A stretch of 64,000 nt of DNA, taken from sequence record PV158447.1. The stretch is one strand, 5' to 3'. The position numbers were made by a program, and so were the translations under genes. The first letter of the stretch is position 1. The number at the start of each line of letters is the position of its first letter. Under the pieces are notes generated by a model. That model saw only the letters and a program-made list of their open reading frames with translations. It had not been told where the DNA came from and ran no database searches. Of this stretch, positions 2,622 through 61,133 are shown piece by piece.

Positions 2622-2663
2622 TAGATCCTTTTCCTTTTGAATTAAGCCTCATAGCATCTAAGG

Positions 2664-2695
2664 AGAGAACTCTACCCAACTGGGTAGAGTTCTCT
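2664..2695. terminator. Intrinsic terminator hairpin
   Basis: AGAGAACTCTACCC-AACT-GGGTAGAGTTCTCT, 14-bp perfect stem just after the nrdB stop. Confidence 0.75.
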
Positions 2696-2705
2696 TAAAA
2701 GTTAT

Positions 2706-3839: not shown

Positions 3840-4037
3840 TTCAGTTTCTCTCTTTAATGAATAAGTTGGTTACCTAGCTTAACATCTAGTTGAGAGTATT
3901 TTCTAAATCTCGTTTCTATTATATTGTAAGCTTGGATCAGTGCACCGGTAGGTGGGGAAGGGGTTTTGTTTATTATATAAAAGAGATTACGAAGTAATCA
4001 TCCTTATTTATTAGTCCGTAGTCTTGTATTCTTTTTT

Positions 4038-4078
4038 AAGTTCCATTTTATTTGAGATAGATATTATTAATATGTATA
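4038..4078 (+). promoter_or_regulatory. Phage early-type promoter, copy 1
   Basis: AAGTTCCATTTTATTTGAGATAGATATTATTAATATGTATA; recurs upstream of seven + strand units; core resembles the phiKZ early TATATTAC motif. Confidence 0.75.
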
Positions 4079-4107
4079 ACAACCAATAAACATTTAGGAG
4101 TTAAGAA

Positions 4108-4878: not shown

Positions 4879-4889
4879 GGAATAATGAA

Positions 4890-5405
4890 ATGAAAGACTT
4901 CATGGATAATAATCAAGAATTCAACGAGTGCAAAGTCATTTGCTGTTTGTCAGCGCCGCAGAACAGTCGCACTGGCTTTGTTCTGAACAACATTCTCTAC
5001 GGTATCTGTAAAGGTTATAATGACCTATGGGACATGGCACCTGACGCCATCGGTTGTCCTCACAATGGTGGTGAGCATAGTCTTACTATTCGCGGGTCAC
5101 GGCAGGATGTAGTTACTTGGCTGGACCTGGTGGTTGAAGAGTTCCCTGATTGGGAAGAGTGTGCTAAGTTTGTTAAGAAACTGATCCGTCAACGTTTCCT
5201 GCAGGCCGACTGGCGTAAATTCGGAAAGATCAACGTGAACTTGCGTAGAGAGAAAGTTCAGATCTTTGACAAGGTACAAGAGGAATGGCGGGACCAATGG
5301 TGGTTCCGGGGCGATTGGGAGAATACTCCTCGGACCGAATGGAAACCGACTCGTAAACAACAAGCTATTCTGGATAAGAACAAACCAGTAGCTAACCGCG
5401 GGTAA
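4890..5405 (+). CDS. Hypothetical protein (171 aa)
   Basis: AAGGA SD, operon spacing. Confidence 0.8.
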   Translation: MKDFMDNNQEFNECKVICCLSAPQNSRTGFVLNNILYGICKGYNDLWDMAPDAIGCPHNGGEHSLTIRGSRQDVVTWLDLVVEEFPDWEECAKFVKKLIRQRFLQADWRKFGKINVNLRREKVQIFDKVQEEWRDQWWFRGDWENTPRTEWKPTRKQQAILDKNKPVANRG

Positions 5406-5432
5406 AGACCATTCAATTTAGGAGATAAGAAA

Positions 5433-5954
5433 ATGGGTGAGAAAGACTTTCAGAAGTTCATGATGAACTTGTCGCGTATTTTGGGGATCACTGGTGATAT
5501 GGTGGTTTGTTTTAACCGCATTCCTGGTGATGTCATCATGATAAGCCCCAAGGTTACAACCCCGATTGATATTTCCTATAAACACCAGAATCCAGATTCA
5601 CTGGCAGTTGGTGAAGGGATCTCTGTTAATGTTGGATTGCTAGATGACGGTACTTTCGAAGAAATCCTCAAAAATGCCTATGAGAATAACGAGTTCCGGT
5701 TTGACTATCCTGAGGAAGTTCTGGAAAAGCTGAAACCTGAAGGCTTAGGTGTTTCTTCCAAACGGCTCCAGGAGTTCATTGAAGAACTGAGAGAAACCCC
5801 GAATGATCGCGAGTCACAGCAGCCCAATACGGGCGGGTTCAAAATAAGTGCTCAACAAGCACATCGAGTGGTGGGTTTCTTCGCTCCAGAGGTCACTCTG
5901 GAAGAAGTACAGAAACTGATCGAAGCCATTCAACTTGAAGAGGTACGCAAATGA
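5433..5954 (+). CDS. Hypothetical protein (173 aa)
   Basis: TTAGGAG SD. Confidence 0.8.
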   Translation: MGEKDFQKFMMNLSRILGITGDMVVCFNRIPGDVIMISPKVTTPIDISYKHQNPDSLAVGEGISVNVGLLDDGTFEEILKNAYENNEFRFDYPEEVLEKLKPEGLGVSSKRLQEFIEELRETPNDRESQQPNTGGFKISAQQAHRVVGFFAPEVTLEEVQKLIEAIQLEEVRK

Positions 5955-6349
5955 GTAAGGTCATGCACATATGTCCGCCTAGTCATGAAAAGTGGTACAA
6001 AGAACTGGTAAAGGGAATGGATCCGCGTTTCGAACAGTTGAGACGTGATCTGGGCTATGAACCAAACCTCGGTAAATGTCTATATTACACAGGTCTTCCT
6101 CCCCTCAAATCCAGATTGTCGTTTATCATTGAAAACATCATTGCTGGTGTTCCCGCAATGACTACTTTGATTTCCGACTTCATCCGACCGCGTCTATCTC
6201 ACAACGACATCCCAAAAACTTATAAATTTGAATACTGGGAACCTGACTGGAATCAGCCTGGGGTTATTGATCTTGAAAACGGCATGTTTGAAATGCAAGT
6301 AGGCGCCCTGGGTACCTTTAATTTCAATAAACGTTTTTATCCCAAATAG
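5951..6349 (+). CDS. Hypothetical protein (132 aa)
   Basis: ATGA overlap with upstream stop. Confidence 0.8.
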   Translation: MSKVMHICPPSHEKWYKELVKGMDPRFEQLRRDLGYEPNLGKCLYYTGLPPLKSRLSFIIENIIAGVPAMTTLISDFIRPRLSHNDIPKTYKFEYWEPDWNQPGVIDLENGMFEMQVGALGTFNFNKRFYPK

Positions 6350-6377
6350 TAAATATTTAATTTAGGAGAATAATAAC

Positions 6378-7184
6378 ATGCTTTCCCAGAATAAAGATTG
6401 GTTCAAGTACGATGGGTATTGGAGGACTTGGAACCGAGTCCTCACCCGAATGGGCGGGGACAATAACCCAGTTGAAATCGAAATCACCATCCACCCTGGT
6501 AAGTTCACTGGCGCTTCTAGTTGGGAAACAATTTCCGAACTTCGCATCAGGCGCCACAGAACGCCTTCTGACAGCTCCGATGTTTGGACTCACCATTTAC
6601 CGGACAACATCTACAACGAGATTGTGGAGGCTTTGGGAGATAATTTTGCAAAGGTTCTGGTGCATGTCGATCTTCTTTCCCACATCCAACCCAACTTCCA
6701 TCATGAGGAAGCTGGAAGTGGGGGAAGTCGGTTGAGGAGCATTTACCAAGAAACTCCGCCACAGTTCTTATTGTACGGGACCGGCAAGGATCTTGGTTAC
6801 CAGACTTTGACTAATAAAACACTGTTTGTTAACGCAATAGGTAACGTTGGGATTATGTTACCTAAACACGTTAAGGTGATTGGTGGAATCTCTATTAAAT
6901 CTGGTTACGAGACTCTTCCATCGTTTACCATGATCAGTTATCACGATGTGGATAAAAACGAGCTGGTAGGTCACTTCTCCGTCACTCACGAAGGTGATAG
7001 TATTTTCACTGTGAGGTCTCCCAACTCACCATTGGTGTGGAAAGAAACTGTATTGAAGACACTCGATTTTGTTTGGAACAAGAAAGAGAATTATCCGTGG
7101 GTGGCCGGAGAGTTATTTAAAGATCACCTGAACGAAATAGTTAAACACGCTGAAGGTCGTTTCAGTATCATCAATGTTATTTAG
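6378..7184 (+). CDS. Hypothetical protein (268 aa)
   Basis: TTAGGAG SD. Confidence 0.85.
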   Translation: MLSQNKDWFKYDGYWRTWNRVLTRMGGDNNPVEIEITIHPGKFTGASSWETISELRIRRHRTPSDSSDVWTHHLPDNIYNEIVEALGDNFAKVLVHVDLLSHIQPNFHHEEAGSGGSRLRSIYQETPPQFLLYGTGKDLGYQTLTNKTLFVNAIGNVGIMLPKHVKVIGGISIKSGYETLPSFTMISYHDVDKNELVGHFSVTHEGDSIFTVRSPNSPLVWKETVLKTLDFVWNKKENYPWVAGELFKDHLNEIVKHAEGRFSIINVI

Positions 7185-7199
7185 TAGAAGGAATACAAC

Positions 7200-8021
7200 A
7201 TGTTTATGATTTCCGAATCCCTGTCTCGTATCTGGAATAAACTCAGTTTTGACTGGGGAGATGTTTATTACTACCAGCGTGCTCCGAAGTGGGCTGTTCA
7301 CGCCAACAGTGAATCCAAGTTCTTTGGTTCTGGTACCAAGATCGAAACTTGGTCAGGTCAACGTGCGATGGTTCTTGTTAACCGTAGTAACGAAATCCTC
7401 GTTTACCACATGAACGATGGGTTCAGCTACATCAACGATAACAATGCCTATGAAGTTGTCTGTGTCTTCCCGGCAGAATGGTTGAACATCACCATGATGA
7501 ACATCATCGAGTTCCAACTCGGTTGGTGGAACCGTAAAGAGTTCGGCGAAAAGATCAACAAACTGGTTGAAACTGGAACTGATGTTGACTACAAAGGCAA
7601 GGCCGGTTGGTACTTCAAAGTGACCTTGGAAGGTCTGAAGTTCAAGTTCGTGAAACGCCCAGAAGCTGGATTCCGTCCAATCTCCCCGGAATTCATTCCG
7701 TTACTGATGGTGGTTAAAGAACAACAGGTCGTGTTCCGCTACCACGATGCACCTGAGTTCGTAATTCACGATCTTGGGCAATCCATTCCTCTCCACTCGA
7801 TGGATGATGACTACGGATTGTTCATGGTGCCCGCCGGCGCACTGACACCGAGCGTAATCAAAGACACTGCGTTCAACTTGGTGAAGGGCGATAAAAAGTC
7901 CTGGGGGAAACGACTCCTGAACATGAATCCCGAACTGGAACTCATTACTGACATCCAGGATGCTCGGGAATGTTATCAGTACAATCCCAATGTCGCTGTA
8001 TTCAACCTCCCCTCTTTTTAA
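7200..8021 (+). CDS. Hypothetical protein (273 aa)
   Basis: AAGGA SD, phage-like codon bias. Confidence 0.85.
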   Translation: MFMISESLSRIWNKLSFDWGDVYYYQRAPKWAVHANSESKFFGSGTKIETWSGQRAMVLVNRSNEILVYHMNDGFSYINDNNAYEVVCVFPAEWLNITMMNIIEFQLGWWNRKEFGEKINKLVETGTDVDYKGKAGWYFKVTLEGLKFKFVKRPEAGFRPISPEFIPLLMVVKEQQVVFRYHDAPEFVIHDLGQSIPLHSMDDDYGLFMVPAGALTPSVIKDTAFNLVKGDKKSWGKRLLNMNPELELITDIQDARECYQYNPNVAVFNLPSF

Positions 8022-8038
8022 TTTAGGAATTTAACGTC

Positions 8039-8962
8039 ATGAAAGAATATCAAGAAATCCGTTTCGTAGAGTATTACGAAGGGCGCTATTTCGGATCCGT
8101 TGAAAGCGCATTTCTCCATCCCGAAATTACCCTCTCAATGGAGACAGTCTCTACCATCATTTTGAACAAAGGACTAAACTCCAATTGGGGACTCGACATG
8201 TCTCCAATTGTTAAAGATGGGTTGGTACTGGAAGGCGGTAAGGTGTTCACTATTCGGGTAATGAACCCAGGAACTACTCTTCGGATAACTGAAGACCAGA
8301 TGTCTGGAAGAAAATTATTGGAAACCCTTAAGAACCTTCGTGATGTAAACCATCACTACCGGAAAGAAAAGGAGAAGGTTTACAATAACAAAGGGACATT
8401 CACTCTTCGGGAAGGGGGTGGTGAAGACGGTTCGGAAGTGTTGGTGCATGTAGATTACTTTGGTAATGGTGTCATGAACATCAGCGAGGTTCTCGACTAC
8501 GATCAACGTGAAAACTTCTTTAAGGAACAACCGCTCCAACTGTACTACAACACTCGCGAAGGGATCAGTTCCGGACTTTACATTTCTAAAGCGGGAACAG
8601 TTATTCCTGGTGGGTGGGAGGTTCTGAATAACTTTGTTATGAAGGACGGGATAGAAAGCATGGAGACGGAACTTGTTCCTGAGAAACGGACTTTCTCAAA
8701 TCTGAAAACCGCTCTTTATTGGTTGCGTGACTCTAAAGGTCTCGGTGAGATCATTGAGAACTACGAGAAGGTTCTGGAGCTGGATCGTCAAGACGAGATC
8801 CGAGCGGCTGCCAACGCTGAACGTCGCAAATTGGAAGAGGTGAAACAGGGTGAACAAACTTCTTCTGGACAATACTCAAAAGAAGAAGTATTGGAAATCA
8901 TCAAGATGCTCCGACCCGATCTGGATTTGGAATCCGGTTTGGTCAAACGGCTGCTGGGGTAA
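8039..8962 (+). CDS. Hypothetical protein (307 aa)
   Basis: TTAGGA SD, coiled-coil-like C-terminus. Confidence 0.85.
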   Translation: MKEYQEIRFVEYYEGRYFGSVESAFLHPEITLSMETVSTIILNKGLNSNWGLDMSPIVKDGLVLEGGKVFTIRVMNPGTTLRITEDQMSGRKLLETLKNLRDVNHHYRKEKEKVYNNKGTFTLREGGGEDGSEVLVHVDYFGNGVMNISEVLDYDQRENFFKEQPLQLYYNTREGISSGLYISKAGTVIPGGWEVLNNFVMKDGIESMETELVPEKRTFSNLKTALYWLRDSKGLGEIIENYEKVLELDRQDEIRAAANAERRKLEEVKQGEQTSSGQYSKEEVLEIIKMLRPDLDLESGLVKRLLG

Positions 8963-47798: not shown

Positions 47799-50700
47799 TT
47801 AATTGGTATTGACTCCAGGTGCGGTTTTGCTAGACAGATGTCCATTAATCATATCCAGAAGCCCAACTGCTTGACCCAACAGTTGTTTAACTCCCTCATC
47901 ACTTACATCAATTGTCCCCTTAGGTAGGGTAACAGTTGTTGTAATATCCTTCGGTTTAACCGGGGGAACTGGTTGTGGAAGTTGAACCGTTGGTGTTTTG
48001 GTGGTTGTGGTGTCGGAAGCGGCTTTCTCAGTTGCTTTCTGCTTCTGAGCGGTTTGTTTCACTTCCTGAACACGTTCAGTTTCGGTTCGGGTCGGAGACC
48101 CCAGCCCGTTACTAGCACCAGTTGTGGCTGGTTTAGGTTCCTGAATGGTCTTGGTACTGTCTGCTGCATTCAGAGCATTATCTACCTGGGCTTTCTTACT
48201 GGATTGGTTTTCTCCAGAAATCTTGCTCGGTTCAACGTTCTGATCAGCTGCCGCCGGAATGGGATCAGGTTGAGCTCCGTACGGATCTGCTGAAACATCT
48301 CCCACTGGGACTTGAATGTCTCCATTGTTCAGTTTGTTCAAATAGTCCTGGTAGAACTTACGGCGAGTGTCAGTATCAGGAACGGCATTACCTCCATTAA
48401 TGCCGCGAGCGGCAGTTTCAAAGTTACCTGTTTTCCCAATGTCCATCATCGCCTTGTTGCTCTTCAGGAACCGAACAGCAGATTCTGCCATGATCTTCGG
48501 ATCTTCAGATACCAACTCGGGATTCTTCACCACGTCGACGTCGAGTTCGTTCGCTAGACGTTTGTAGTTATCTTTACCAGTCAGCTGGAAGAAACCACGT
48601 CCACGATACAACCAACCGTCTTCTGGTTTCTCGTTACCCAGAGTAGGGCCTTTTGGAGCACGGCCGTAGACATACATCGCTCGTTCAGGAGCCGGCATGG
48701 CGGCGACTTTCTGGGCGGTAGCCATATCCGGAATGTTTCGGAAATACTTCTTGAGAGTAGGGGCGGACCAGTTGGTATTCTCAACTGTGTTCTGATAGTC
48801 CCCAGTTTCTTTCCGTGCCATCGCCAACCCGAGAGCCAACTGTTTCTTGTCCGTGATTCCGTGTTTCAGCATGGTGTTCAACATGAGTCGTTCACCGTCT
48901 TGGAGAGATAGTTTAACACCATTATCTTCCCCTGCCTTCTTCAGAATCTCCGGATTGTAGTTGGAGTTGTAACCTCCCTCAAATTGACCACCTGGTCCCA
49001 TGTCAGACCAGTTACTTCCTTGCTGACCATAAGCATTTGGCATCCCACCGGCACCAAAACTCATTCCTGACCCACCACCACCTACTCCAACGTTCCCAGC
49101 AGAAGCTTGACGTTGAGTTCCCCAAGCACGATTGAATGCAGAGTTAATTGCATCGGTCCGTTGTTTCTTCTGAACAGAATCTTGGAGAGCCTGAGTTTTA
49201 ACACTCTTACTCTTTTGTTCTTCCAGATCGGGATCTTTCAATCTTGCTTCTGAAGCTTTGCTGTCCAACATGGTTAAGTAGCGTTCAGCTCGACCAGAGA
49301 CAGTACCTGACTTGGAGGAAGGGAAGGGTGACGCTTCAACTTCCCAAACGGAAATGTCTTCACCATCTTTCTCTACCCTAACCGAGGTTAGTTCCCGAGC
49401 CACTTCTACCTTGTTGGTTGCGGAGAGAGCTTGCCAGGCTTTCGCAGGTTTAGCATTACGGAGTTCGTGAACCAACTGAACGTAACGTTTCAAGATAGGA
49501 AGGAAACGGTTGTTAAACCAATCCATCCAGTTCCCTTCTGCCAACGGTTTCTCAATACGGAACATCGGTTTAAAGAGTTCCAGAACCCGACTAGCACTAC
49601 CAGAGAACTTCATCTCAGAACCAGTGGGGTCAATCAGTGCCTCGCAGTAACGTTCCAGCCTAAGCACCGCGTCCACTCGCCACGGCATGTTATCCACGTT
49701 ACCGTAGGCAGCAAGACGAGCAAAAGTGAAGGGATCAATTGGTGTGTCGTTATTCTTGTGCATATCAGAGATGTCAATTTGTTTCACTTCCTCTGGGGAC
49801 TTGAACTTCTTATCAATCTGTTCCTGATACATCTTCGCACTGCTATCACCAAGGAGATCTTGGAAGAAACCAGCAACACCAGTTTTCTTAGGTTCGTTTT
49901 CACCCAGGGCTTTACTCCGGGACTCTTCAGCAGTTAGAAGAGTGAGATCAGCTTCTGGTTTCTTACGTTCCTTCCGCATTTCAGTTAACAACTCGTTCAC
50001 TCGACGCTGGGTTTGGATCTCGGTCATGATCGGAGTGTCAGGAGAGATTTGAACTTGGATAGATAATGGATTAGGATCCATCGTCACCAAGCTACCCTGG
50101 AGTCGTTCACAAACCTGGAGAGATTCCCAGTTAGAGTTCGAGTCGAAATCATTGAGATCCCCGAAACGGCCAATGGATGTCGCTGCATTGTAAAGAAGGA
50201 ATACGGATTTGAAGCGAGCCACAAACCACGTCTTCACCTGATCTTGCAATTCAGGTCCAAGAGAAGCACCGAACTGTTTAATCATTTTCATTACCGGAGC
50301 ATCGTCTCTCAGAGAAGCACGATTCCCACGAATCACAACGTATGGAATCAACCACTGCTCCAACTCGTCGATCTTTATCGCCAGAGGACTGTCTACCTTA
50401 TTCAAACCGTATTGAGCGTAACGGATTTGTTTCTGGAGACTAAACGACTTAGCTGGATCACGGGTTAAGGAAACAGGCGCAACAACTCCATCACGTTCGT
50501 CTTCGTAGCGGTTACGATCTTCAACAGACAAGAAACGTTTCCCATCGTCAGACACGATCTCTTTAGAACCGGTTTCATAAAGACCCAGTGCTTGACCAGC
50601 CATCATCGCAACAGAAGTGGGAAGGTAAAAACTCGCCGCCATTTCGGCCGGTGTCAGTGAGGAAGTATTTTCCTCATCCCGTTTTGCTCGTTCTGCTTGA

Positions 50701-53700
50701 CGAAGTGCGTAAGCATCTTCTTGGGCAGTACGTTGTGGACGGTAGAACTCTCCCTCGTTATCCTGCTGAACGGGTTCATCGGAACCAAAGGCATCCATTC
50801 CATACATCGTCCCGCCAGCCAGCATGGCCCCGCCCAGGATCTTACCAGGCATCCCTAATCCACCGATGGCCCGACCTAGTCGACCGAACATCCCCGGTTT
50901 CCCTCTAGGAACTTTCCCACCTGGTTTACCACGACCACCACCAGTCCCAGGGATATCCCCAGCGGCACCTGCAAGATCACCTGCTGCACTTAGCATCTTC
51001 CCACCAGTGAGTACGGAACCCAAACTAGTGAATCCCCACTTCAACATTTTCATGATGGGAGAAGCAATACCCAGAACGCCTGAGAAGAGCATGGAGCCAA
51101 TCTTGGCCAGTCTGCCAACGGAAGCTGTCAGTGTTCCCACCAAAGCACCACCGATCGTTCCAATGGGGTTCTTAATGAGGTTCGTAATGAACCCACCCAT
51201 TCCACCCAAAAGTCCCATCAGTTTCCCGAAGATCCCTTTTTTCTCTTCCGGTTCTTTCTCGTCTCCTCCTTTCAGAGCAGAAGCGATATCCTTGATAGCA
51301 TTGGAGGTATCGGCACGATCTTTCTCTTTGGCTTTGTTCTGTTTATCTGCGAACGAGTTAAGGCGAACACCACCTTCTGCAAGTTCATCCGCCTCCTCGT
51401 CATTTACAGATATGCCAAACTGTTTGGAGAGTAACGCATAGATCTTGTCAAGACGTCGCTCAACACCACCAGACGCACCTGGAGAACGTTTACCTTGTCC
51501 CTCCGGGGTTTCCTCGGAACTATATCCAAAACGTCCCAGAAGTGAATCTGCGAGCTTCTTGGCGATACCCAAACCAGATGACATCAGTTTACTCGCGCCA
51601 GCACCCGTGTTACGGATAACCTGACCTGTTTCAGTTACCAGTCCATCTTCGAACTCTTGCTGGGTAATAACTTCGTCGCCATCTTCATTGTAGACAGCTC
51701 CATCGATTTCATTCCAACCCATGACAGGTTCGAACTTACCGTTATTATCTTTCCAGTACTCGTGGTTCTTAAATCCAGTTGCTGTTAAACGAGGACGTTT
51801 GGTATTGCTTTTCACGTACACGTTCTGCTGGTAAATGAGTTCCTTACCAAACTGAGCAAAAGCTTTCATTTTCCCAACTGGGTCAACAAAGTTATAAGCA
51901 CCAAGAGCAAGTTCCTTGGCTTTGGTCAAACCAGAGAGAACAACCTCACGACCATCTGGACCAAAGATCTTTTTGGCCAGATCTTTGACCCCAATAGTGG
52001 CCTTGGTAACAGCATCGAAAATAGGACCACGAATGTCACGCCAGGTTTTGATGATGCGCTTGGTAATAGCGTCAAAGTAGTGACCCGCTTTCAACTTGGC
52101 GGATTCAAGGATTGCTTCCCCGTTCTCATCCAGGACGTCTTCATCGTCATTTGGTTCTTGACCTGAACCCATTTGGACAGCGGTTCTGGAGAAGTGTTGG
52201 TAAACCCCACCTACAAGAGCACCGCCGGCAATTGTCGCTGCGGCGAGCAATGGGTTCTCAACGAAACTCGCACCAAGGGTGCCGATTAAAGAACCGAGTA
52301 CCATAGGTTGGTTCTTCATCAGGATATCCATCCCACGACCTAACAAGTTAGTCGGGAGGAGACCTTTGATCTTGCTCATGAAAGAACTGGTCGCTTTCTC
52401 TTCAGCACGTTCTTCATTAACTGTTTTAGCGCCAGTGAGAATCTGACCTTTCTCAGCAAGTTCCACCAGCCTGGTCATCAGAGTTTCAATACCAGTGGTG
52501 CTACCCGCAATACCAGCCAAAGAACTTTCCAACTTCTCGAAACTAGGAAGAGGACTTGCTCGCTGAGAGAAATCATTCTCTTTCAAAACGCCTGAGAGTC
52601 CCGAGATACTCTCATTGAGCTCTTCCAGACCCTTGATGCCCAACGTACCGCCGGAACCACCAGAGGGTGTTTTAGGGCCCTTAGGAAGGACAAAGGAAGT
52701 GGGTGCAGGACCATCCCCTCTGTTAATCCCGCCTTTGAGGATTGGATTGTTAGGATTGTCCATGAACTGACCGATGCGTTCGTGGAATATTTCCATGTTG
52801 ACTTTGTCAGCACCATTCTCGGTATAGATCACTCCCAGGTCTCGGAGCATCTGTTCATTACCAGTTGAACGAAGCAAGTCAATCCGTTCAGCAACATTAG
52901 GGAACAATGTCTTCAGGTTAGCCGCAGCAGCACCTGCTTTATTCAAACGAACGTTAGCTTCTTCTGAACCCATGTCGGTCATAACACGCATTTTGTCGAT
53001 AGCGGTACCATTCTTGAACCGATCGATAGACTCATCTGTCACGTTGAAGTGACGTTTCATCAGCGCGTTGATTTCTTTACTGGCGGTTGGGGAAACACCG
53101 GGAATCTCTCCAACATAAAGGAATGGTGAGAAACCTTTCTCTTTATCCACATCACGAGCGATAGCCTGAGCAAAGGCTTTACGAGTACTCTGACTAAGAC
53201 GTTTCTCTGGATCGAAAGAATCGACCATCTCAAGTGCGGCAGAAGAGAACCGGGAGAAATCAGAATACGGCATCAAATCAGCTTGTACCGAAATGGCTTT
53301 ATTCCCTTGATCCATGAACTGACCACGCATGTAGGAATAGCTGATCTGATCTTTCATTTCCCCAGTGCGGAGACCTTCCACACTCTGGTGGATGGAACTC
53401 AACAAACCTGGCAACACTTCGTTCAGTGTAATGTTGTTCATCTCCTTCCAGATACCTGGTTGGTTCAGATCTTTCACATTACGTTTAGAGATCGTGTACT
53501 GCGTTCCTTTCGCCTTTGTCATCTCTGACATGAATTGGTTAATGGAACTCTTCCCACGGTTCGTGACAGCGTTCTGAACAGTCCAACGCGCTTTGCTGAG
53601 AGGCTGACCTTCCCCTTTGAAGTTATCAAGGTAGTCTTGATAATCCAAATACGGCATCTCATCCAGACTCTCCCAGTTTTCTGCCAGGATGTTAATGAGG

Positions 53701-54917
53701 CCCGTCATGTTGTTAGCGGCATAAGAGGAACGGTTGCCGATGTTACTCAATTTACTGTAACCTTCGGAAAGGCGTTTGGCTTGTTCCGGGTTCTTTTTCG
53801 CTAACTTTTCAATCCATCCTTTACCTGCTCCACGCTCGAAGAAGTAAGGGAGGTTGTTAATTACACTTTCCGCTACGTTCCGACCGATAATGTCTCCGAA
53901 CATCCCTTTGGACATTGGCATGTCTTCCGACATTTCCATCATGTCAACAATGGAGCTCAAGAGGAAGTTAGTTTCTGTATAAGCTTCGTTACGTGCAGAC
54001 TTCCCAAACTTCTCTCGCATCAACCCAGTCAGACCACCTTTACGGTCACCGATGGTGCTGAAGAGTTTATTTCGAGCATAAGCTTTACCGGCAGTGAAAT
54101 GAGAAGTTTTCTCGTAATCACTTTTCCCAGAGTTAATCACAATCTTCTTGAGTTCTGTCACTTCGGTATGAAGTGCTTTCTCCATGAACTTGTAATACTT
54201 GATATCCGCAACGTAAGAACGTGCCATCAAGTTGATCTTACTCTGGTCCATTTTGTATTGGACGTTACGCTGATAGTCAACCAAAGATCGGATGGAGCTT
54301 TCAATTCCCACTAGTTGACGATTACCCGCCATCATGGAGCCATTCAACATGCCGCCAACGGTAGCTGACATCTCATTCAGAGTTTGTCCCAACGCAGAGA
54401 ACATAGAGCTCTGGGATTCCATGGAGTTGCTGATTGCTGCATCTACGTCGTAGTTATTCTCCCGGTCCATCTCTGGCATGGAATCGCGATTCGAACTGGA
54501 ACTATCTTCCCAGTGGGAGAAATCTTTCTGGGAGAACTCCGACATTCCTTCAGACACAAAACCTGGGAGTTTCCCTTCCATTTTGGTGGAGAGCTTGCCA
54601 GCTATGTTTTGTAGGTATTTAACGGACTCAACGTTCTGTTTTTGGAAGTCTTCTTTGATCTCGTCCAGTTTTTCACTGGCCCAAGAAACTTTATCGAGTG
54701 CATTACTGAAACTAGAAGGAAGTACTGTTCGGAGTGTTCTCATTCGAGCAGAACTGCTTCCCACTGTTTCATCAACCAAGCCGGAAAGGAAACCGGAGGT
54801 CGCACCTCCAATAAACCCTTTATTGGCAAATGGATCCATATCAAAATCCATGTCGAGATCAAAATCCCCACCAAAGGGATCATCCCAATCCAGATCAAAA
54901 TCGTCTTTAGACGCCAT
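47799..54917 (-). CDS. Giant tail (tape-measure-like) protein with C-terminal GH19-type lysozyme (phiKZ gp181-like, 2372 aa)
   Basis: DDFDLDWDDPF N-terminus; Gly-rich hydrophobic stretches; KETG...DGWLYRGRGFFQLTGKDNY...INGG. Confidence 0.85.
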   Translation of the reverse strand: MASKDDFDLDWDDPFGGDFDLDMDFDMDPFANKGFIGGATSGFLSGLVDETVGSSSARMRTLRTVLPSSFSNALDKVSWASEKLDEIKEDFQKQNVESVKYLQNIAGKLSTKMEGKLPGFVSEGMSEFSQKDFSHWEDSSSSNRDSMPEMDRENNYDVDAAISNSMESQSSMFSALGQTLNEMSATVGGMLNGSMMAGNRQLVGIESSIRSLVDYQRNVQYKMDQSKINLMARSYVADIKYYKFMEKALHTEVTELKKIVINSGKSDYEKTSHFTAGKAYARNKLFSTIGDRKGGLTGLMREKFGKSARNEAYTETNFLLSSIVDMMEMSEDMPMSKGMFGDIIGRNVAESVINNLPYFFERGAGKGWIEKLAKKNPEQAKRLSEGYSKLSNIGNRSSYAANNMTGLINILAENWESLDEMPYLDYQDYLDNFKGEGQPLSKARWTVQNAVTNRGKSSINQFMSEMTKAKGTQYTISKRNVKDLNQPGIWKEMNNITLNEVLPGLLSSIHQSVEGLRTGEMKDQISYSYMRGQFMDQGNKAISVQADLMPYSDFSRFSSAALEMVDSFDPEKRLSQSTRKAFAQAIARDVDKEKGFSPFLYVGEIPGVSPTASKEINALMKRHFNVTDESIDRFKNGTAIDKMRVMTDMGSEEANVRLNKAGAAAANLKTLFPNVAERIDLLRSTGNEQMLRDLGVIYTENGADKVNMEIFHERIGQFMDNPNNPILKGGINRGDGPAPTSFVLPKGPKTPSGGSGGTLGIKGLEELNESISGLSGVLKENDFSQRASPLPSFEKLESSLAGIAGSTTGIETLMTRLVELAEKGQILTGAKTVNEERAEEKATSSFMSKIKGLLPTNLLGRGMDILMKNQPMVLGSLIGTLGASFVENPLLAAATIAGGALVGGVYQHFSRTAVQMGSGQEPNDDEDVLDENGEAILESAKLKAGHYFDAITKRIIKTWRDIRGPIFDAVTKATIGVKDLAKKIFGPDGREVVLSGLTKAKELALGAYNFVDPVGKMKAFAQFGKELIYQQNVYVKSNTKRPRLTATGFKNHEYWKDNNGKFEPVMGWNEIDGAVYNEDGDEVITQQEFEDGLVTETGQVIRNTGAGASKLMSSGLGIAKKLADSLLGRFGYSSEETPEGQGKRSPGASGGVERRLDKIYALLSKQFGISVNDEEADELAEGGVRLNSFADKQNKAKEKDRADTSNAIKDIASALKGGDEKEPEEKKGIFGKLMGLLGGMGGFITNLIKNPIGTIGGALVGTLTASVGRLAKIGSMLFSGVLGIASPIMKMLKWGFTSLGSVLTGGKMLSAAGDLAGAAGDIPGTGGGRGKPGGKVPRGKPGMFGRLGRAIGGLGMPGKILGGAMLAGGTMYGMDAFGSDEPVQQDNEGEFYRPQRTAQEDAYALRQAERAKRDEENTSSLTPAEMAASFYLPTSVAMMAGQALGLYETGSKEIVSDDGKRFLSVEDRNRYEDERDGVVAPVSLTRDPAKSFSLQKQIRYAQYGLNKVDSPLAIKIDELEQWLIPYVVIRGNRASLRDDAPVMKMIKQFGASLGPELQDQVKTWFVARFKSVFLLYNAATSIGRFGDLNDFDSNSNWESLQVCERLQGSLVTMDPNPLSIQVQISPDTPIMTEIQTQRRVNELLTEMRKERKKPEADLTLLTAEESRSKALGENEPKKTGVAGFFQDLLGDSSAKMYQEQIDKKFKSPEEVKQIDISDMHKNNDTPIDPFTFARLAAYGNVDNMPWRVDAVLRLERYCEALIDPTGSEMKFSGSASRVLELFKPMFRIEKPLAEGNWMDWFNNRFLPILKRYVQLVHELRNAKPAKAWQALSATNKVEVARELTSVRVEKDGEDISVWEVEASPFPSSKSGTVSGRAERYLTMLDSKASEARLKDPDLEEQKSKSVKTQALQDSVQKKQRTDAINSAFNRAWGTQRQASAGNVGVGGGGSGMSFGAGGMPNAYGQQGSNWSDMGPGGQFEGGYNSNYNPEILKKAGEDNGVKLSLQDGERLMLNTMLKHGITDKKQLALGLAMARKETGDYQNTVENTNWSAPTLKKYFRNIPDMATAQKVAAMPAPERAMYVYGRAPKGPTLGNEKPEDGWLYRGRGFFQLTGKDNYKRLANELDVDVVKNPELVSEDPKIMAESAVRFLKSNKAMMDIGKTGNFETAARGINGGNAVPDTDTRRKFYQDYLNKLNNGDIQVPVGDVSADPYGAQPDPIPAAADQNVEPSKISGENQSSKKAQVDNALNAADSTKTIQEPKPATTGASNGLGSPTRTETERVQEVKQTAQKQKATEKAASDTTTTKTPTVQLPQPVPPVKPKDITTTVTLPKGTIDVSDEGVKQLLGQAVGLLDMINGHLSSKTAPGVNTN

Positions 54918-54950
54918 TTCTATTTCCTCTCTATTAGGAACCTTAGTGCA

Positions 54951-56826
54951 ATGAAAAGAGACCCAACTAACTTTACGCTGTTAGATCCAGCGAAGTTCAA
55001 ATGGGAGTTAATGACTCCGGTCACCAGCGGTGACACCTTCGAAGGCCAAACGACCAACTTACATCCAGATGGTTTATACTCGACCGAGATTTTCGGTCGG
55101 GTAGGGACGGATGACCGGGACAAAACTGAGTCCTACATCGACACCATTCTTCCTATCTTTAACCCCACGTACTTTAAAGCACTCGTGCAGTTGAAATCTC
55201 TCTACCTTGAAATTATCAAAGGCAGAGCTTTTGCTGTCTGGGATCCTGATAGTCAGGATTTCATAAAATCCAACGTCTTGGATGGCGACACTGGTTTTGC
55301 TTTCTTTATGTCTCACTTTGGGGAATTGGATCCCAAAGAGAATGACTCCTTTAAACGTTCACAGAAAATCCAGTTAACTCAAGAGTTTAAAGATCGGGCT
55401 TTGCATCGTCGGATTCCTGTTTATCCAGCTGGTTTGCGAGATGTCGAGATCGCTCCCAATGGCGCGGTAATAGAGAATGAAGTTAACGATCTATACCGTA
55501 AGCTCTTTTATCGTTCTCGCTCTCTGAACATCAAGAATCCTGATCAACTGGATCCTGTTTACGATAACATCCGGTGGGGTGAACAAGAAGCCCTGAACAA
55601 CATCGATGAATACTTCTTCGGACTGATGGATGGTAAACGTGGATACATGCAACGTCGTTTGGCACGTCGTTCTATTTTCTCCGCGACACGTAACGTCATC
55701 ACTTCTCGAAAAGTATCTGTAGAGGACATGGACGATGCCCAAACGAATGATCCCAACTCTACCATCATTGGTTTATACCAAGCCCTGTTGGGTTACACAC
55801 TGGTTGCTCAACACGAAATCCTTTCTGGGTTCTTGACTTCTGTATTCACCCCAGGTATGAACAGTGCTCGTTTAGTAAACCCCAAGACACTAGAGAGTGA
55901 GTACGTTGAACTGAACTCTCAGATAGTTGATAAATACACGTCGTCCGATGGTGTGGTAAAATTATTTAACGGGTACGGTAACCCGAGTTTGCGTAATCGT
56001 CCGATCCGAATCAAAGGTCATTACCTGGCTTTAGTTTACGATGATGGTGAACGGGTTTGTTTGCTGAATGACGTTAATGATCTTGGGGAAGGACTGGACA
56101 AGAAGTTTGTTCGTCCTGTAACATATACTCAGTTCTTTTACATGCAAGTAGCAAAGGCAATTGAGAAAAAGATGTTACAGATCACTCGTTATCCCATCAC
56201 AGGGATCGGTTCTATTGTGCCGACACGGGTTTTCATTCTTCCCACCAACGCTTCGTCCAGTAAACGTAAACTGATAGACATTGACGGGACTGAATTGGAC
56301 ATGTTCCATTTCTTCCCGGAACACGACGAGAATCCCTCTTATTTTGACGGGATGTCAATTAGCAACATTCGACTTGAAATGGCTGGTGGTGACTTTGACG
56401 GTAAATAGTTGCCGCTTTCTACAGTAATGTAGATTGAAACTGTGCGGAATGAAGCAAGGAGTCCCTCCATTTAGGGAGAACTTGAACCGAAGGCTAGATT
56501 AACGATTTAGTCAGGGGCAGAGCATAGATGGTGAACCCTCTCCATTAAGAGGAATATAATCCATCCACGAGGCCGCACCACCCTACTGGGGTGAAAACGT
56601 ATGCCGATACTTTCAGCAATGGAAGAGTGAAGATAAAAAGCTTCACATTAACATATTGGACCAATTATCAGCCAACGCCATTCAAGCTCAAGATGCTATC
56701 GACGAAGTTTCTACAATGTTTGGTAAACGCATTTTCTACATCTCTGGAGGAGGAGACTTCTTGTACAGCCCAGTACAGGAGCCTCACGAATTCCTGCTCA
56801 GAGCACTAACTAATGGACTCGACTAA
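54951..56826 (+). CDS. Virion RNA polymerase beta' N-terminal subunit (phiKZ gp180-like); exons 54951-56402 and 56659-56826, 539 aa spliced
   Basis: HPDGLYSTEIFG, IPVYPAGLRD, LMDGKRG, ITRYP, and GGDFDG|DQLSANAI restored by splicing; exon 2 stop overlaps the beta ATG. Confidence 0.88.
56403..56658 (+). ncRNA. Group I self-splicing intron (256 nt, no homing endonuclease)
   Basis: Exon 1 ends in U (GACGGT); intron ends in G; IGS GCCG (56411-56414) pairs with exon CGGU including the U.G pair; P7-like GCATA (56522-56526)/TATGC (56600-56604); removal restores DFDGD in frame. Confidence 0.85.
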
Positions 56827-59800
56827 TGTTTACAAAAGAGCAATTAGGTTTTCCGTTAATCGACGGGAGTGAAGCTGGACAATATTCCCAGTTTCTAAAA
56901 GTCTGGGGAACTCGGGAACGTGTCAACGACATTATCAATCCCAAGAACCCACTGATCGGGGATGTCGTCCTTCCCCGAAATTCGGTTATTCATTATCAAC
57001 AACATCATCCTGGTGAGATGGGTCCGAGTAACCAAGCAGCGTTCATTTCCAATTATGATGCCCAGGTTAACATTTATTTCTGGCCAGATTTCGACGCTCC
57101 ACTTGGGGTCGTTAAGAATGTGCTATTCAACTTCACCAAAGAAATCAAGAAGTATGAATCAGGACATTTCAAGTACAAGCGTGCTCGTAACTACCAAACT
57201 GTGATTGGGAAGCCGGGTGAGTTACTGGTGAACAACATGGCTCTGCGCCAAGTTCCAATCACTTATAACCGCCAGACGTTCTTTACTCCATTCCAGAATC
57301 AATATAACGTTCTCCATAACTTGATTACTGCCGTTAACCAGTTTGCTGTTAATGACATCCATCAGTTTGCAGAATTCCGTTTACCTCGGGTATTTCCGTC
57401 TTACACTCGGCTACTTCAAAGCTTCGAGAAATACAAGAGGTTCTTTGATGATAACGGGAACATTACTCGTTATGAGAAAGAAGCCCTCCGAGATTTCCAG
57501 GCAGACCAGAACTATTGGTTCCTGGATCTCTTTGGGATTCTGATCGGTTACGACGAAGCAAAGTACAGTCAGTTTAATAAACTGAGTGAAAAAGCTCGTG
57601 GACAATTGGAGATGATCTTCACCTATGAAGGTAAATGCTGGATCGTCAATCTTCAAACGCTCATTAACCTGCTGAGTAGTGAAGATAAACCGAACGCTAA
57701 AGGTCCCTCTCCTTCGAAGTACAAATACTTCAAACGTTTCTACTTGGCGCTGTTTAACCTTGTTACGCCTATGGTGGAAGAAATAAAGGAACAAACAAGT
57801 GATGAAGAAAGTGAGGGTTCCAAGGAAACCCAAGAAGGAAAAGGAACTGGGACTGTTGGAAAGGGTGATTCGGCAAACAAGGACAAGGTTCCTAGTACTA
57901 ATCCTAATCCTCTTGCTGATGTTTACATCAACACTAACGGGCCTAGCGAAAGCCCTGTTCCTCCTGTACTGGAACAAACCACTGACGGAAGCGGAGATCC
58001 TGAATCTCCAGATGAAATATGGGAACGAGAAGTTGACGACGCAGTCTTCGAATCTGCCACAGTCGAATCTGCCAGCATCACAACAGGGAAGGTAAAGTAC
58101 GGGCCGACAGCCGCGATTGATCGAATCTTGTCTGAGCGGGCCAGGAAGGGTACTCTGACTTCTAAGGAGAAAGAGTACTTTACCAACATCGCTAACTCTT
58201 ACAAAGACATTGAGTTCGGTGGAAAGTCACTGGAAGAAATTATTAACGTCACTCCAGAAGACTTGAAACTGAAAACAGAGCAGCTCGGTCCCGACTCTCC
58301 GATTATTACCGACAACTCTGTCATGCACTCCCGAGTAGCTCAACTGAGTAATCAGTATCGGGAAGAACTTCTGGAACGTGATATCATCTCTTCTCTGGTG
58401 ATGGGTGCACAATCCGGTGGGTTTGCTGTGCTGGACATGGATCGTGAAACCATCATCACCGCTGAATCCAAGTTTGACGTTTACACCATGAAAGTTCAAC
58501 CAATTCCGGAAGGTAGTCAGAGTACTCGTCGTTTCCGGATCCCTCGGGTGGATGAAGACAACACCTTTACTATCGGTGACGTGAAGATGTACGGCCAGAA
58601 AGTACGGATGGAGATTCCTATTCGGAAAATCAGTCGTACTAAGGTCGCGCTAACTTCTTATTACGATAAGAAGATCATGGTAGAGCGTTCCCCTTATCGG
58701 GTTAATAACTTTGGTGAGTGGTTGAAGAGTAACATCATCCAAAAGAGTTACACTGATAAGAGTCTCTCTATTCAGTTGGGTGGTTACACTCCTTCCCAAC
58801 AGAAGGTCTGTTGGTATTACTCTATCCTAGCCAGTCGTTTCAAGCTAATTGAGAATCCTCAAATTCATTTGAACTTCAACACAGATGAACTGATCGGAGA
58901 CAATAAAGATTGGCGTCGTCTTTGTAATGAAGAGACTTGGGTAGTTGGAGTTGAGGATGGTGTTCCTGTTCTGATTGACAACACGGGTTTAATCACTGTT
59001 GATGGTAGTGAACGCGGGTATGTGGAAGAACTGCTGGGACTACCCATGCACAAAGCACCTGTCCCCAACACCACCATGAATATCAACGGTTACAAGTTCC
59101 AGACCATCGTTGTTCTTTCCTACTGGGTTGGTTTCTCTGAGATTATGAAACGTCTCAAACCGACGTTCCGGATTGTGGAGCCTGGTCAGCGAGTCAATTT
59201 GTCTCCCGACGAGTACATGGTTCAGTTCGCTGATGAACGGTTGGTTTTCAACCGTCGTGAACCGTTAGCCACATTGGTGTTCTCTGGTCTGAATAATCTA
59301 CCTGGGATTCGGAACTTCTCCCGAGCTCAGTTGGACGATCCTTCTGTTTGGTTCTCCATTGTGGGTGATAGTAAAGTCAAACCTTCTCACTTTGGTGAAA
59401 TGAGTCAGATGTTCAACCAGTTCATCGATCCGATGACTGCTCGTGAATTGGTTAAATTGAAAGAACCTCAGGTATTGGACCAGCTGATCTTGAGAGCAAT
59501 TGAGATGCTGACCAATAACGAAACTCTTCCCGAGGTTGAGATCACTGAGCAACGCTTGGTTGGCTACGAGCGTTTTGCAGGGCATGTTTATCGCGAATAC
59601 GTGAAGTCTACTCGTCAGTTCCGGAACAAACCCGGTGGTGTGAAGAAGACCTTCGACCTGAACCCTGAATCGATCATGATGAACATTCTGACGGATTCTT
59701 CTTTCCAAAGTGTCGAGGAAGTAAACCCTGTTCACCAAGTCAAACAGGAAGAAGAAGTCACGTTCGGCGGTTCGTTTGGTCGTAGTGATCAAGCAATGGT

Positions 59801-61133
59801 TCGGAGAACACGTGGACAACAACCTAACTACGAAGGGATTATCTCTGAAGCGGGTAAGGACTCGGGTAAAGTTGGTTTTATCAGTTACTTAACTTCCGAT
59901 CCGAAGATCGCTGACTTGGGTGGTAATGTTAACGTTAAGGAGAAAACGACCAAAGCGGGACGGATGAGTATTACTGGTAACTTGTTGTACGGGACCACAC
60001 GGGATGATACCAAGAGAAGTTTGTTCTCAGGTGTTCAGCTGAGTCAGTGGATGGCCGCCGACTCATACGGACCCAATCCCATTCGCACTTCCTACGACGC
60101 TCAACTCATCTATCGTAACTCAGAACTCTATGGTTCTATTGCGAAACAAGATGGTGTTGTGAAGAGTGTTGATAAATATGGCATCGTCGTCACGTACCAA
60201 GATGGTTCCGAAGGAAAGTTCCCTTTAGGTTATGACATCGGTAAGGGAGCGGGGGAATATCACAAACACAATAAAGTCACTGATGTTAAACCAGGTGATA
60301 AATTTGTGAAAGGGAAGGTGTTGGCTTGGGACGAATGTTTCTTTACTCGTGATGTGGCTGACCCTAATCGTGTTACCACCAAAATCGGAACCATGACTCG
60401 TATTTGGCTGGTAGAAGATCAGTTTACCTTTGAGGATTCCCTGGGGATCGCTAAGGAGTATGCTGACAAGACCAGAACACCTTACGTTAAACAAAACCAT
60501 CTCTCCGCTGCTTTCAACGAACATGTTAATTTGTTCGTTAAAGTAGGTGACCACGTTGAATATGACCAAGTTCTGGCAGAAGTGCAGGATGAAGGCGCTG
60601 CCATGTTCAACGAGTTCAATGATGGAGATATGGTTGGTCTTGATCGATTGGGCGTTAAACAAGAGAAAGCGAAACATACCGGTCGAGTTACCAAGATCGA
60701 ACTGTTGTACAACGGTGATCCGGAAACAGCCACTCAATCTGTTCAGCAGTTGATTAAACAACAGGACAGTTATCGTAGTAAAGTTGCTAACTACAAGAAA
60801 GACACAGCCACCACTGGTTCTGTGGGCGGTCATACTTCTATCGGTAAGAGTAAAATCTATATCGATACGCTGGTTTTGAATATCTACATCGAAGCTGACT
60901 TAGCAACTACCGTTGCGGATAAGTTTGTTGCGGGAAACCAGATGAAAGGTACCGTTGCCTATATCTACCCGAACCCGATCACCACCCCGGACGGTCGGAT
61001 AGTGGATATGACGTTCTCTGTGAAGTCGTTGCTGAACCGAATGGTATTGAGTCTTCGTGATAAACTAGTTGGTAATGAAACAAACTGGGTTTACACTCAT
61101 CGATTGATTAACAAATATGGGAGATATGATTGA
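56826..61133 (+). CDS. Virion RNA polymerase beta subunit, N-terminal part (phiKZ gp178-like, 1435 aa)
   Basis: QQPNYEGIISEAGKDSGKVG, SLFSGVQLSQ, FTFEDSLGI, ADKFVAGNQMKG; synteny with gp180/gp181-like genes. Confidence 0.88.
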   Translation: MFTKEQLGFPLIDGSEAGQYSQFLKVWGTRERVNDIINPKNPLIGDVVLPRNSVIHYQQHHPGEMGPSNQAAFISNYDAQVNIYFWPDFDAPLGVVKNVLFNFTKEIKKYESGHFKYKRARNYQTVIGKPGELLVNNMALRQVPITYNRQTFFTPFQNQYNVLHNLITAVNQFAVNDIHQFAEFRLPRVFPSYTRLLQSFEKYKRFFDDNGNITRYEKEALRDFQADQNYWFLDLFGILIGYDEAKYSQFNKLSEKARGQLEMIFTYEGKCWIVNLQTLINLLSSEDKPNAKGPSPSKYKYFKRFYLALFNLVTPMVEEIKEQTSDEESEGSKETQEGKGTGTVGKGDSANKDKVPSTNPNPLADVYINTNGPSESPVPPVLEQTTDGSGDPESPDEIWEREVDDAVFESATVESASITTGKVKYGPTAAIDRILSERARKGTLTSKEKEYFTNIANSYKDIEFGGKSLEEIINVTPEDLKLKTEQLGPDSPIITDNSVMHSRVAQLSNQYREELLERDIISSLVMGAQSGGFAVLDMDRETIITAESKFDVYTMKVQPIPEGSQSTRRFRIPRVDEDNTFTIGDVKMYGQKVRMEIPIRKISRTKVALTSYYDKKIMVERSPYRVNNFGEWLKSNIIQKSYTDKSLSIQLGGYTPSQQKVCWYYSILASRFKLIENPQIHLNFNTDELIGDNKDWRRLCNEETWVVGVEDGVPVLIDNTGLITVDGSERGYVEELLGLPMHKAPVPNTTMNINGYKFQTIVVLSYWVGFSEIMKRLKPTFRIVEPGQRVNLSPDEYMVQFADERLVFNRREPLATLVFSGLNNLPGIRNFSRAQLDDPSVWFSIVGDSKVKPSHFGEMSQMFNQFIDPMTARELVKLKEPQVLDQLILRAIEMLTNNETLPEVEITEQRLVGYERFAGHVYREYVKSTRQFRNKPGGVKKTFDLNPESIMMNILTDSSFQSVEEVNPVHQVKQEEEVTFGGSFGRSDQAMVRRTRGQQPNYEGIISEAGKDSGKVGFISYLTSDPKIADLGGNVNVKEKTTKAGRMSITGNLLYGTTRDDTKRSLFSGVQLSQWMAADSYGPNPIRTSYDAQLIYRNSELYGSIAKQDGVVKSVDKYGIVVTYQDGSEGKFPLGYDIGKGAGEYHKHNKVTDVKPGDKFVKGKVLAWDECFFTRDVADPNRVTTKIGTMTRIWLVEDQFTFEDSLGIAKEYADKTRTPYVKQNHLSAAFNEHVNLFVKVGDHVEYDQVLAEVQDEGAAMFNEFNDGDMVGLDRLGVKQEKAKHTGRVTKIELLYNGDPETATQSVQQLIKQQDSYRSKVANYKKDTATTGSVGGHTSIGKSKIYIDTLVLNIYIEADLATTVADKFVAGNQMKGTVAYIYPNPITTPDGRIVDMTFSVKSLLNRMVLSLRDKLVGNETNWVYTHRLINKYGRYD

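Follow-up and report, generated by a model that had tools for sequence, protein, structure and literature searches.

The question raised by the first 64 kb of the genome of Aeromonas phage AhC3_1 (PV158447.1, 232,884 bp), the stretch of DNA analysed here and called the window (100% identity to the record, coordinates unchanged), is why a gene for a catalytic subunit of RNA polymerase (RNAP) should stop within its own catalytic motif. An open reading frame (ORF) at 54951-56408 on the plus strand ends ...LEMAGGDFDGK-stop, the stop after GGDFDG-K that the initial annotation had pointed out, and a gap of 417 nt separates it from the next ORF, of 1435 amino acids. It is very probable that the 256 nt at 56403-56658 on the plus strand are a self-splicing group I intron (subgroup IA, without an ORF) that interrupts the gene for the virion RNAP beta' subunit at DFDG|D. 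Such an intron had been proposed in the initial annotation, and it is borne out by colinearity with intron-less relatives, by a fold that is backed by covariation and has the P7.1 and P7.2 helices of a subgroup IA-like intron, by a covariance model built from this fold (R1), and by the terminal G and the U.G pair with the internal guide sequence GCCG, both found where they had been placed.

AhC3_1 is a phiKZ-like jumbo phage, and exon 1 of the interrupted gene (54951-56402, plus strand) encodes 484 amino acids ending ...GGDFDG that are orthologous to phiKZ gp180 and PhiPA3 gp212. Exon 2 (56659-56826, plus strand), recognised from its PHROG match and from relatives, supplies the third catalytic Asp and 54 amino acids after it (DQLSANAIQ...TNGLD); its frame translates as DQLSANAIQAQDAIDEVSTMFGKRIFYISGGGDFLYSPVQEPHEFLLRALTNGLD-stop, 55 amino acids, and its TAA at 56824-56826 overlaps the ATG of the 1435-amino-acid gene as TAATG. 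Removal of the 256 nt after GGT, up to ...ATATTG, rejoins the protein and leads into this overlap exactly as had been described. Within phrog_2986, which has 539 positions, the first piece matches 6-488 (E=2e-182) and the second 488-539, and since the two matches abut at 488 it is one protein family that runs exactly across the gap. To judge from sequence comparison the host gene is the N-terminal beta' subunit of the virion polymerase, because PhiPA3 shows the same gene order (gp213, a giant tail protein; gp212, annotated as similar to phiKZ gp180; gp211, gp210 and gp209, similar to phiKZ gp178), because orthologues of the gene carry the annotation virion-associated beta', and because its N-terminal part matches the beta' chain of the non-virion RNAP (nvRNAP) of phage AR9 (PDB 7S00_d). 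The phiKZ gp178 protein is a subunit of the polymerase packaged in the virion (PMC11620839).

In the Aeromonas phages D3 and pAEv1810 and in Pseudomonas phage OBP the same gene is a single uninterrupted ORF of 518-539 amino acids that reads GGDFDGDQLSAN... across the site (GGDFDGD-QLSANSIQ, with DALSANSIM in OBP). When the DNA is aligned the entire insert is one gap between GGT and GAC, with D3 reading GACTTTGACGGT-GACCAACTT against GACTTTGACGGT-[256 nt]-GACCAATTA in AhC3_1; the comparison with intron-less relatives that the initial annotation had suggested thus places the interruption exactly at GGT|GAC. The intron-less site exists in a D3 type, GACGGTGACCAA, and a recoded pAEv1810 type, GATGGAGATCAG. 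A 55-amino-acid piece encoded apart from the main subunit in relatives had been named as the finding that would speak against an intron; in all intron-less relatives examined it is fused to the main subunit, and separate coding sequences are found only in the intron-bearing phages ACP1, CF8 and PS1, where exon 2 is annotated as a hypothetical protein that in ACP1 and PS1 starts at the TTG with which the intron ends. In AhC3_1 and ZPAH34 exon 2 is unannotated, and the intron is annotated in none of the GenBank records of AhC3_1 or its relatives.

A tblastn survey with the last 100 amino acids of the D3 protein as query matched 171 phage records, and among the matches listed (60 rows) the gene is split at the site only in AhC3_1, ZPAH34, CF8, ACP1, PS1 and PS2; in the non-Aeromonas orthologues listed the two coding parts are joined. 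In the same survey the matches to the Vibrio phages 2 TSL-2019 and VP4B start at query residue 44-45, just inside DFDGD, and those to other Vibrio phages begin at residue 15-17; the late start could mean that these sequences have diverged or that they are interrupted just ahead of the motif.

The insert starts after GGT (U56402) and ends with ...ATATTG (G56658), so that within DFDGD it separates the Gly codon from that of the third Asp (GGT|GAC), and it contains no ORF of endonuclease length. At its 5' end the exon sequence CGGU and the first two intron bases, AA, form the P1 hairpin (56399-56414) with UUGCCG, the guide strand lying at 56409-56414 and its GCCG at 56411-56414. The six base pairs are C56399-G56414, two G-C pairs, U56402.G56411 at the splice site, A56403-U56410 and A56404-U56409. 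The U.G pair is kept in all five distinct copies of the intron among the Aeromonas phages and in 46 of 62 aligned members of the wider family described below, and the terminal G is likewise kept in all five Aeromonas-phage copies. An in-frame TAG at 56406-56408 (plus strand) lies two codons into the intron, with translation of unspliced RNA ending ...DFDGK, and in each of the five phages an in-frame stop occurs 2-9 codons past the splice site, ahead of the catalytic core. The predicted junction, GACGGU|GACCAA, recreates the sequence of the intron-less D3, with a predicted junction peptide of ...GGDFDGDQLSANAIQ... and a predicted junction-spanning tryptic peptide of ...LEMAGGDFDGDQLSANAIQAQDAIDEVSTMFGK.

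Helices were first assigned by eye, and the assignment was then checked against an alignment of the five copies, in which 66 pairs are scored. Standard pairs occupy 98.8% of the cells and 21 of the 66 pairs show changes on both sides with pairing kept. When the 3' partners are slid by 1-3 columns pairing falls to 32-42% and double changes to 2-4, and none of 500 shuffles matches any observed measure, although such pair-count controls on five sequences can be inflated by relatedness. RNAalifold without a supplied structure gives identical P1-P6, P7.1, P7.2, P8, P9 and P9.1, and the minimum-energy fold of the single sequence (z = -3.2) already makes most of the helices visible. Compensatory changes are found in P2, P5, P6, P7, P7.1, P7.2, P8, P9 and P9.1.

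From the 5' end (all on the plus strand) P1 is followed by P2 at 56417-56438, which is capped by a GUAA tetraloop (56424-56427) and has compensatory changes in 4 of its 5 inner pairs. The 5' strand of P3, GUGCGG (56442-56447), which pairs with CCGCAC (56573-56578), is invariant in the five phages; across some 96 family members P3 is at least 98% paired, with several pair types per position. Within 56455-56510 lie P4 (56455-58/56481-84), P5 (56462-66/56473-77) and P6 (56494-99/56505-10), with compensatory changes in P5 and P6 within the Aeromonas phages and in P4 across the family. The 5' strand of P7 (56520-56526) comprises G56520, a bulged A56521 and GCAUA (56522-56526), and its partner lies at 56600-56605, with UAUGC at 56600-56604; G56522-C56604 is presumed to be the guanosine-binding pair, and the pair 56524/56602 is A-U in AhC3_1 and G-C in its four relatives. 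P7.1 (56527-31/56561-65), with two compensatory pairs, encloses P7.2 (56537-41/56548-52), with three, and P7.1 is 98-100% paired family-wide. Subgroup IA typically has extra helices, such as these two, in the interval from P7 to the P3 3' strand. The 3' half of the core (56573-56605) consists of the P3 3' strand (56573-78), P8 (56579-83/56589-93), a J8/7 joining region of AAAACG and the P7 3' strand (56600-05). The remainder (56610-56658) holds P9 (56610-14/56621-25) with four compensatory pairs, P9.1 (56627-32/56641-46) with two, and the 3' tail AUUAACAUAUUG ending in G56658. In this model the order P3-[P4 P5 P6]-P7-[P7.1 P7.2]-P3'-P8-P7'-P9, with its P3/P7 pseudoknot, marks the insert as a group I intron of the IA type.

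It is apparent that this intron belongs to a class that lies outside the Rfam group I model. The Rfam group I search proposed in the initial annotation came back empty for the intron: RF00028 gives no match in the window at the gathering threshold, none at E<=10 on a 701-nt slice (56200-56900), and none to the intron at four related Aeromonas-phage loci. Other Rfam matches in these scans (snoRNA, CRISPR, miRNA) were at chance level only. The same model scores three introns of Twort orf142 at 64-101 bits and a canonical intron in Raoultella phage VB_ZK_P1 at 63.8 bits, and because the Twort controls score so high the miss is read as a limit of sensitivity for the class and not as a failed fold. 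R1, made from the five-copy alignment with P7 left out as being a pseudoknot, finds exactly one copy in the window (329 bits). A scan of IMG/VR for the core pattern yielded at least 107 loci, and R1 recovers from IMG/VR loci at least 125 mostly full-length relatives, 200-300 nt long, ORF-less and at many insertion sites. The core of the class in IMG/VR loci L013-L119 reads GAACCGAAGG ... CAGGGGCAGAGCAUAG ... AAAACGUAUGC.

Within the family alignment of about 100 relatives pairing in each helix is 88-100% and involves several pair types, counts that, P7 excepted, come from an alignment fitted to the model. P7 provides an unbiased test of the family fold because it is absent from R1. It is 97-100% paired in 87-88 sequences, and 86 of 87 have the G-C that corresponds to the guanosine-binding pair. 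The pairs that follow are C-G (84/87), A-U (75) or G-C (9), U-A (88/88) and A-U (86/87), and the closing pair beyond the bulged A covaries, being G-C in 50 and A-U in 34. The initial annotation had taken this P7 for a variant of the canonical one; the GCAUA/UAUGC pairing is real and keeps both the G-C pair and the bulged A, but the alignment shows it to be the consensus of a whole large class and no peculiarity of the AhC3_1 intron.

A number of points weigh against a spliced intron at this position, in addition to the relatedness and the model fitting that attend the pair counts. The RF00028 scans failed to match, as described above. The exon share of P1 is short, at 4 bp. P10 is weak and ambiguous: the register proposed in the initial annotation, 56406-56411 with 56662-56667, has 5-6 of 6 positions paired across the five phages, but an alternative contiguous one, G56408-U56410 with G56659-C56661, is equally tenable at 3-4 of 4, and computation favours neither. 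Moving the junction by one base (GACGG|...|GGAC) would leave the protein unchanged, and GGT|GAC is chosen over this alternative only because of the group I rules of a U before the 5' site and a G at the 3' end. No homing endonuclease is annotated in 30-79 kb of the AhC3_1 record (233-kb genome). Lastly, both splicing and the exact junction are what we infer from the anatomy of the insert and the established chemistry of group I introns.

According to that chemistry the exon sequence CGGU on the pre-mRNA would pair with the guide GCCG and so set U56402.G56411 at the cleavage site, where a free guanosine held at G56522-C56604 of P7 would attack after U56402. The terminal G56658 would then occupy the same pocket and the freed exon end would attack after it, joining GGU to GAC. 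The spliced message would give a subunit of 539 amino acids with a complete Asp triad, and unspliced RNA a product of 485 amino acids that ends DFDGK and lacks the third Asp. Multisubunit polymerases need all three Asp of NADFDGD for binding Mg2+. As the unspliced product would lack one of them, an active virion polymerase probably depends on splicing. Nucleus-forming phages keep transcription apart from translation. Chimallin, the shell protein of the phage nucleus, is encoded by ZPAH34, a relative of AhC3_1 (PMC10321303).

How the intron came to the site is suggested by alleles with and without it. PS1 and ACP1, which carry it, and pAEv1810, which does not, are phages of the same genus whose versions of the gene are 94-96% identical overall, yet close to the site, from -19 to +26, nearly all third codon positions differ. 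This amounts to 15 of 57 positions against a background of 5.3% (p ~2e-7) and makes the region the most divergent 45-nt stretch of the gene. Here PS1 is similar to distant phages that carry the intron: over codons +1 to +12 it is 89% identical to AhC3_1, as against 68-69% elsewhere, and between genera the introns are 78-89% identical and the exons 67-74%. All intron-bearing alleles keep GAC GGT before the site, since P1 requires it, whereas pAEv1810 has GAT GGA, which is incompatible with the U.G pair. A divergent exon patch of about 45 nt is the pattern expected from DNA homing with co-conversion and could not be produced by reverse splicing alone, although the reverse direction, with an empty allele received from a diverged donor, is possible. 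The intron most likely reached the site by homing at the DNA level, with a nuclease that acted in trans or has since been lost, and is now inherited patchily among the Aeromonas chimalliviruses.

The site is also occupied in other phages. Raoultella phage VB_ZK_P1 (PV662128.1) carries an intron of the same class at ~2425-2734 of the locus retrieved (~310 nt, R1 137 bits), with the junction GATTTTGACGGT|AAACG..TTGCCGC and the exon resuming at GAT ACC. The gene interrupted is the orthologue of phiKZ gp55, the N-terminal beta' subunit of the nvRNAP (phrog_2987; PDB 7OGP_A, E=1e-29). This intron shares with that of AhC3_1 its nucleotide position (GAUUUUGACGGU|A...), its guide sequence (UUGCCGC), its core class and its lack of an ORF, and differs in having the non-virion paralogue as host, a longer P8 region and a second intron nearby. 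That second intron is the canonical group I intron already used as a control (2037-2363, Rfam 63.8 bits), which lies ~60 nt upstream; all the pieces of the gene are annotated as hypothetical. A blast core match similar to that of VB_ZK_P1 is present in Klebsiella phage phiKp_32.

Scans with patterns of the DFDG codons and the guide sequence gave 92 loci in IMG/VR, one of them left after the covariance model filter, and at least 120 loci in metagenomes, one left after the motif filter. The survivors of both are the same intron, of ~1.5 kb and with an HNH endonuclease gene, at DFDG|D on a metagenomic phage contig, IMGVR_UViG_3300025010_000081 (1-1536, minus strand; L146, with L331 as its metagenome copy). 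Its ORF encodes an HNH endonuclease of 299 amino acids (phrog_59, E=1e-21), and it has the canonical GACUA/UAGUC strands; its host is a beta' gene of phrog_2987. The gene reads SGDFDG|AATCGATTGCCGC... at the 5' end of the intron and ...GATATTG|GATGCATTA at the 3' end, the intron closing with AUAUUG as in AhC3_1, and the protein resumes with D-A-L-Y-S-L-A-V. An earlier break in this beta' gene, after ...LLVGRP, points to a further intron. Comparison of these sequences shows that the identical nucleotide has been invaded in both beta' paralogues at least three times, at least once with a nuclease.

A further explanation, which is compatible with a self-splicing intron, is that the intron is kept because it helps the phage, breaking up the conserved DFDG|D sequence and so making the gene immune to site-specific nucleases of co-infecting phages, or that it is mobilised by such a nuclease in trans. 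The HNH-bearing intron at the identical nucleotide of the metagenomic beta' gene, the related ORF-less intron that VB_ZK_P1 has there in its nvRNAP beta' gene and the divergent exon patch between alleles are all in its favour, as is PhiPA3, where the nuclease of the gp210 intron attacks the neighbouring virion RNAP gene of phiKZ (Birkholz et al. 2024, PMC11620839). Protection of the site from competitors' homing endonucleases, as suggested in the initial annotation, is by analogy plausible, the more so because of the same-site HNH intron and the gp210 case (PMC11620839). However, no nuclease that targets the site has been identified in Aeromonas phages, and a purely selfish element that has lost its nuclease would be just as likely to show a patchy distribution and an exon patch. 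The explanation is for these reasons put forward tentatively. A wider version of it is similarly doubtful: that GGT|GAY in DFDGD is a homing hot spot across paralogues, used by introns of two or more core classes, some with and some without an HNH gene, the ORF-less introns with the variant P7 being immune, nuclease-free survivors of competition during co-infection, or passengers moved in trans.

It might alternatively be assumed that the gene is naturally split, with a product of 485 amino acids and another of 55-56 translated from the TTG at 56656 assembling together, and the 256 nt a structured intergenic spacer that is never removed. Natural splits do occur elsewhere in jumbo-phage RNAP genes (PMC7598289), an in-frame TTG does occupy 56656-56658 and a small coding sequence has been called there in ACP1, CF8 and PS1. 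This arrangement would, however, part the third catalytic Asp from the first two, and no Shine-Dalgarno-like sequence precedes the TTG (CACAUUAACAUA). The supposed spacer has a full group I architecture with compensatory changes, alleles of the same genus that lack it are fused, and the PHROG profile is continuous over the site, which together leave a naturally split gene very improbable. Just as improbable is a decayed, non-splicing intron in a pseudogene, for although the lack of an Rfam match, the lack of an endonuclease ORF and the short P1 could be so read, the helices have been kept by compensatory substitutions while the exons diverged to 67-74% identity, exon 2 is in frame and conserved in 5/5 phages, all of these phages are plaque-forming isolates, and the virion polymerase that contains this subunit transcribes the early genes in phiKZ-like phages (PMC11620839).

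For a self-splicing subgroup IA intron there are close precedents. Essential phage genes with a group I intron at a catalytic site are classical, and the introns of Twort orf142 and T4 nrdB are proven self-splicing phage introns of subgroup IA2. Both share with the AhC3_1 intron the overall IA architecture, in which additional helices separate P7 from P3', and the P1-P2 module is nearly identical in all three (CUUU-stem-GUAA-stem-AU(U/C)GAAAA), the motif CUUU...GUAA...AUUGAAA being common to them. R1 matches the Twort introns at 39.6 and 29.7 bits and the 5' end of the T4 nrdB intron at 18 bits, mainly through P1-P2. The module would tie the class to the self-splicing IA2 phage introns, with P7 and the joining regions set apart: Twort has canonical P7 strands (...GAUAUAGUC...) and is detected by Rfam, whereas the AhC3_1 class has GCAUA/UAUGC and other J6/7 and J8/7 regions and goes undetected.

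The gp210 intron of PhiPA3, within gp211/209, is likewise a group I intron at catalytic-region Asp codons in the virion RNAP operon of a nucleus-forming jumbo phage, and its host gene is the immediate downstream neighbour of the orthologue (gp212, phiKZ gp180) of the gene interrupted in AhC3_1. Unlike the AhC3_1 intron it is in beta and not beta', at another site, and has an HNH gene; its core class differs also, in that R1 finds no match in the PhiPA3 locus. Introns are known in RNAP genes of AR9/PBS1 and of Staphylococcus jumbo phages (Lavysh 2016, as cited in 10.1101/2020.12.14.422802), and the multisubunit RNAP genes of jumbo phages are known to be often interrupted by introns. AR9/PBS1 was considered as a precedent for the same site and rejected, as PBS1 beta' breaks well upstream of DFDGD (...VTRYPIEQYRM) and is followed by endonuclease genes; R1 has no match in the PBS1 beta' locus. 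None of the papers searched reports an intron at a phage DFDGD motif or in any of these Aeromonas phages.

What is new is the insertion site, six unannotated instances in Aeromonas phages, the link to a class that Rfam does not detect, the evidence of homing and the reuse of one site across paralogues, none of which the papers searched mention. At present beta' is annotated without its third catalytic Asp (AhC3_1, ZPAH34) or as two unrelated proteins (ACP1, CF8, PS1), and the correct product is predicted to be the spliced protein of 539 amino acids. Surveys that rely on the sole Rfam group I model undercount phage introns, and a dedicated model would mend many annotations of split genes. If the hot-spot idea is true, many phage genes may be wrongly annotated as truncated or split, given that the class is numerous and invisible to Rfam. 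With DFDG|D the operon known from the PhiPA3 case has a second catalytic site that introns have entered repeatedly, and pairs of phages with and without the intron in one genus provide a tractable Aeromonas system for the study of homing, co-conversion and immunity.

Around the interrupted gene the window holds, upstream, a tail/lysin gene of 2372 amino acids (47799-54917, minus strand). Downstream is the gene for the virion RNAP beta-like subunit (56826-61133, plus strand, 1435 amino acids), the orthologue of phiKZ gp178 and PhiPA3 gp211+209, which matches positions 3-1422 of the 1424 of phrog_3148. It is uninterrupted in AhC3_1, where its RDD motif, at amino acid 1059, is without an insert. 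The 64-kb window has no second DFDGD gene, a single site with one mismatch at 34378 being at chance level, and promoter and terminator scans of 54700-57000 gave results at chance level.

In PS1 (L216, 3290-3700) and CF8 (L217, 3317-3751) the virion RNAP beta gene contains a second ORF-less insert, of ~390-430 nt, directly after a conserved RDD(S), in the region of the published HNH intron of PhiPA3; the empty counterpart in the AhC3_1 window is at ~60000-60012. This second insert has the canonical group I strands GUUCAACGACUA ... AUAUAGUC, and in CF8 it scores 41.6 bits with Rfam, which is under the gathering score of 50.

Among further members of the class that includes the AhC3_1 intron, blast finds examples in Staphylococcus, Clostridium and Bacillus phages, where they frequently lie within genes for the tape measure or the terminase. 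The terminase intron of Lactobacillus phage LL-H was tried as a characterised member and rejected, as R1 has no match in LL-H 1-8000 and the Rfam score is only 22.5 bits. Several IMG/VR loci have two or three clustered copies, for example L065 with three within 7029-8201 and L013 also with three. Yersinia phage phiR1-37 (L009, 2403-2711) has a member in an unannotated gap of a gyrase A-like gene, between g328 and g329, and Listeria phage LIS04 (L011, 2441-2681) has one in an unannotated gap of a terminase region that carries intein and endonuclease annotations.

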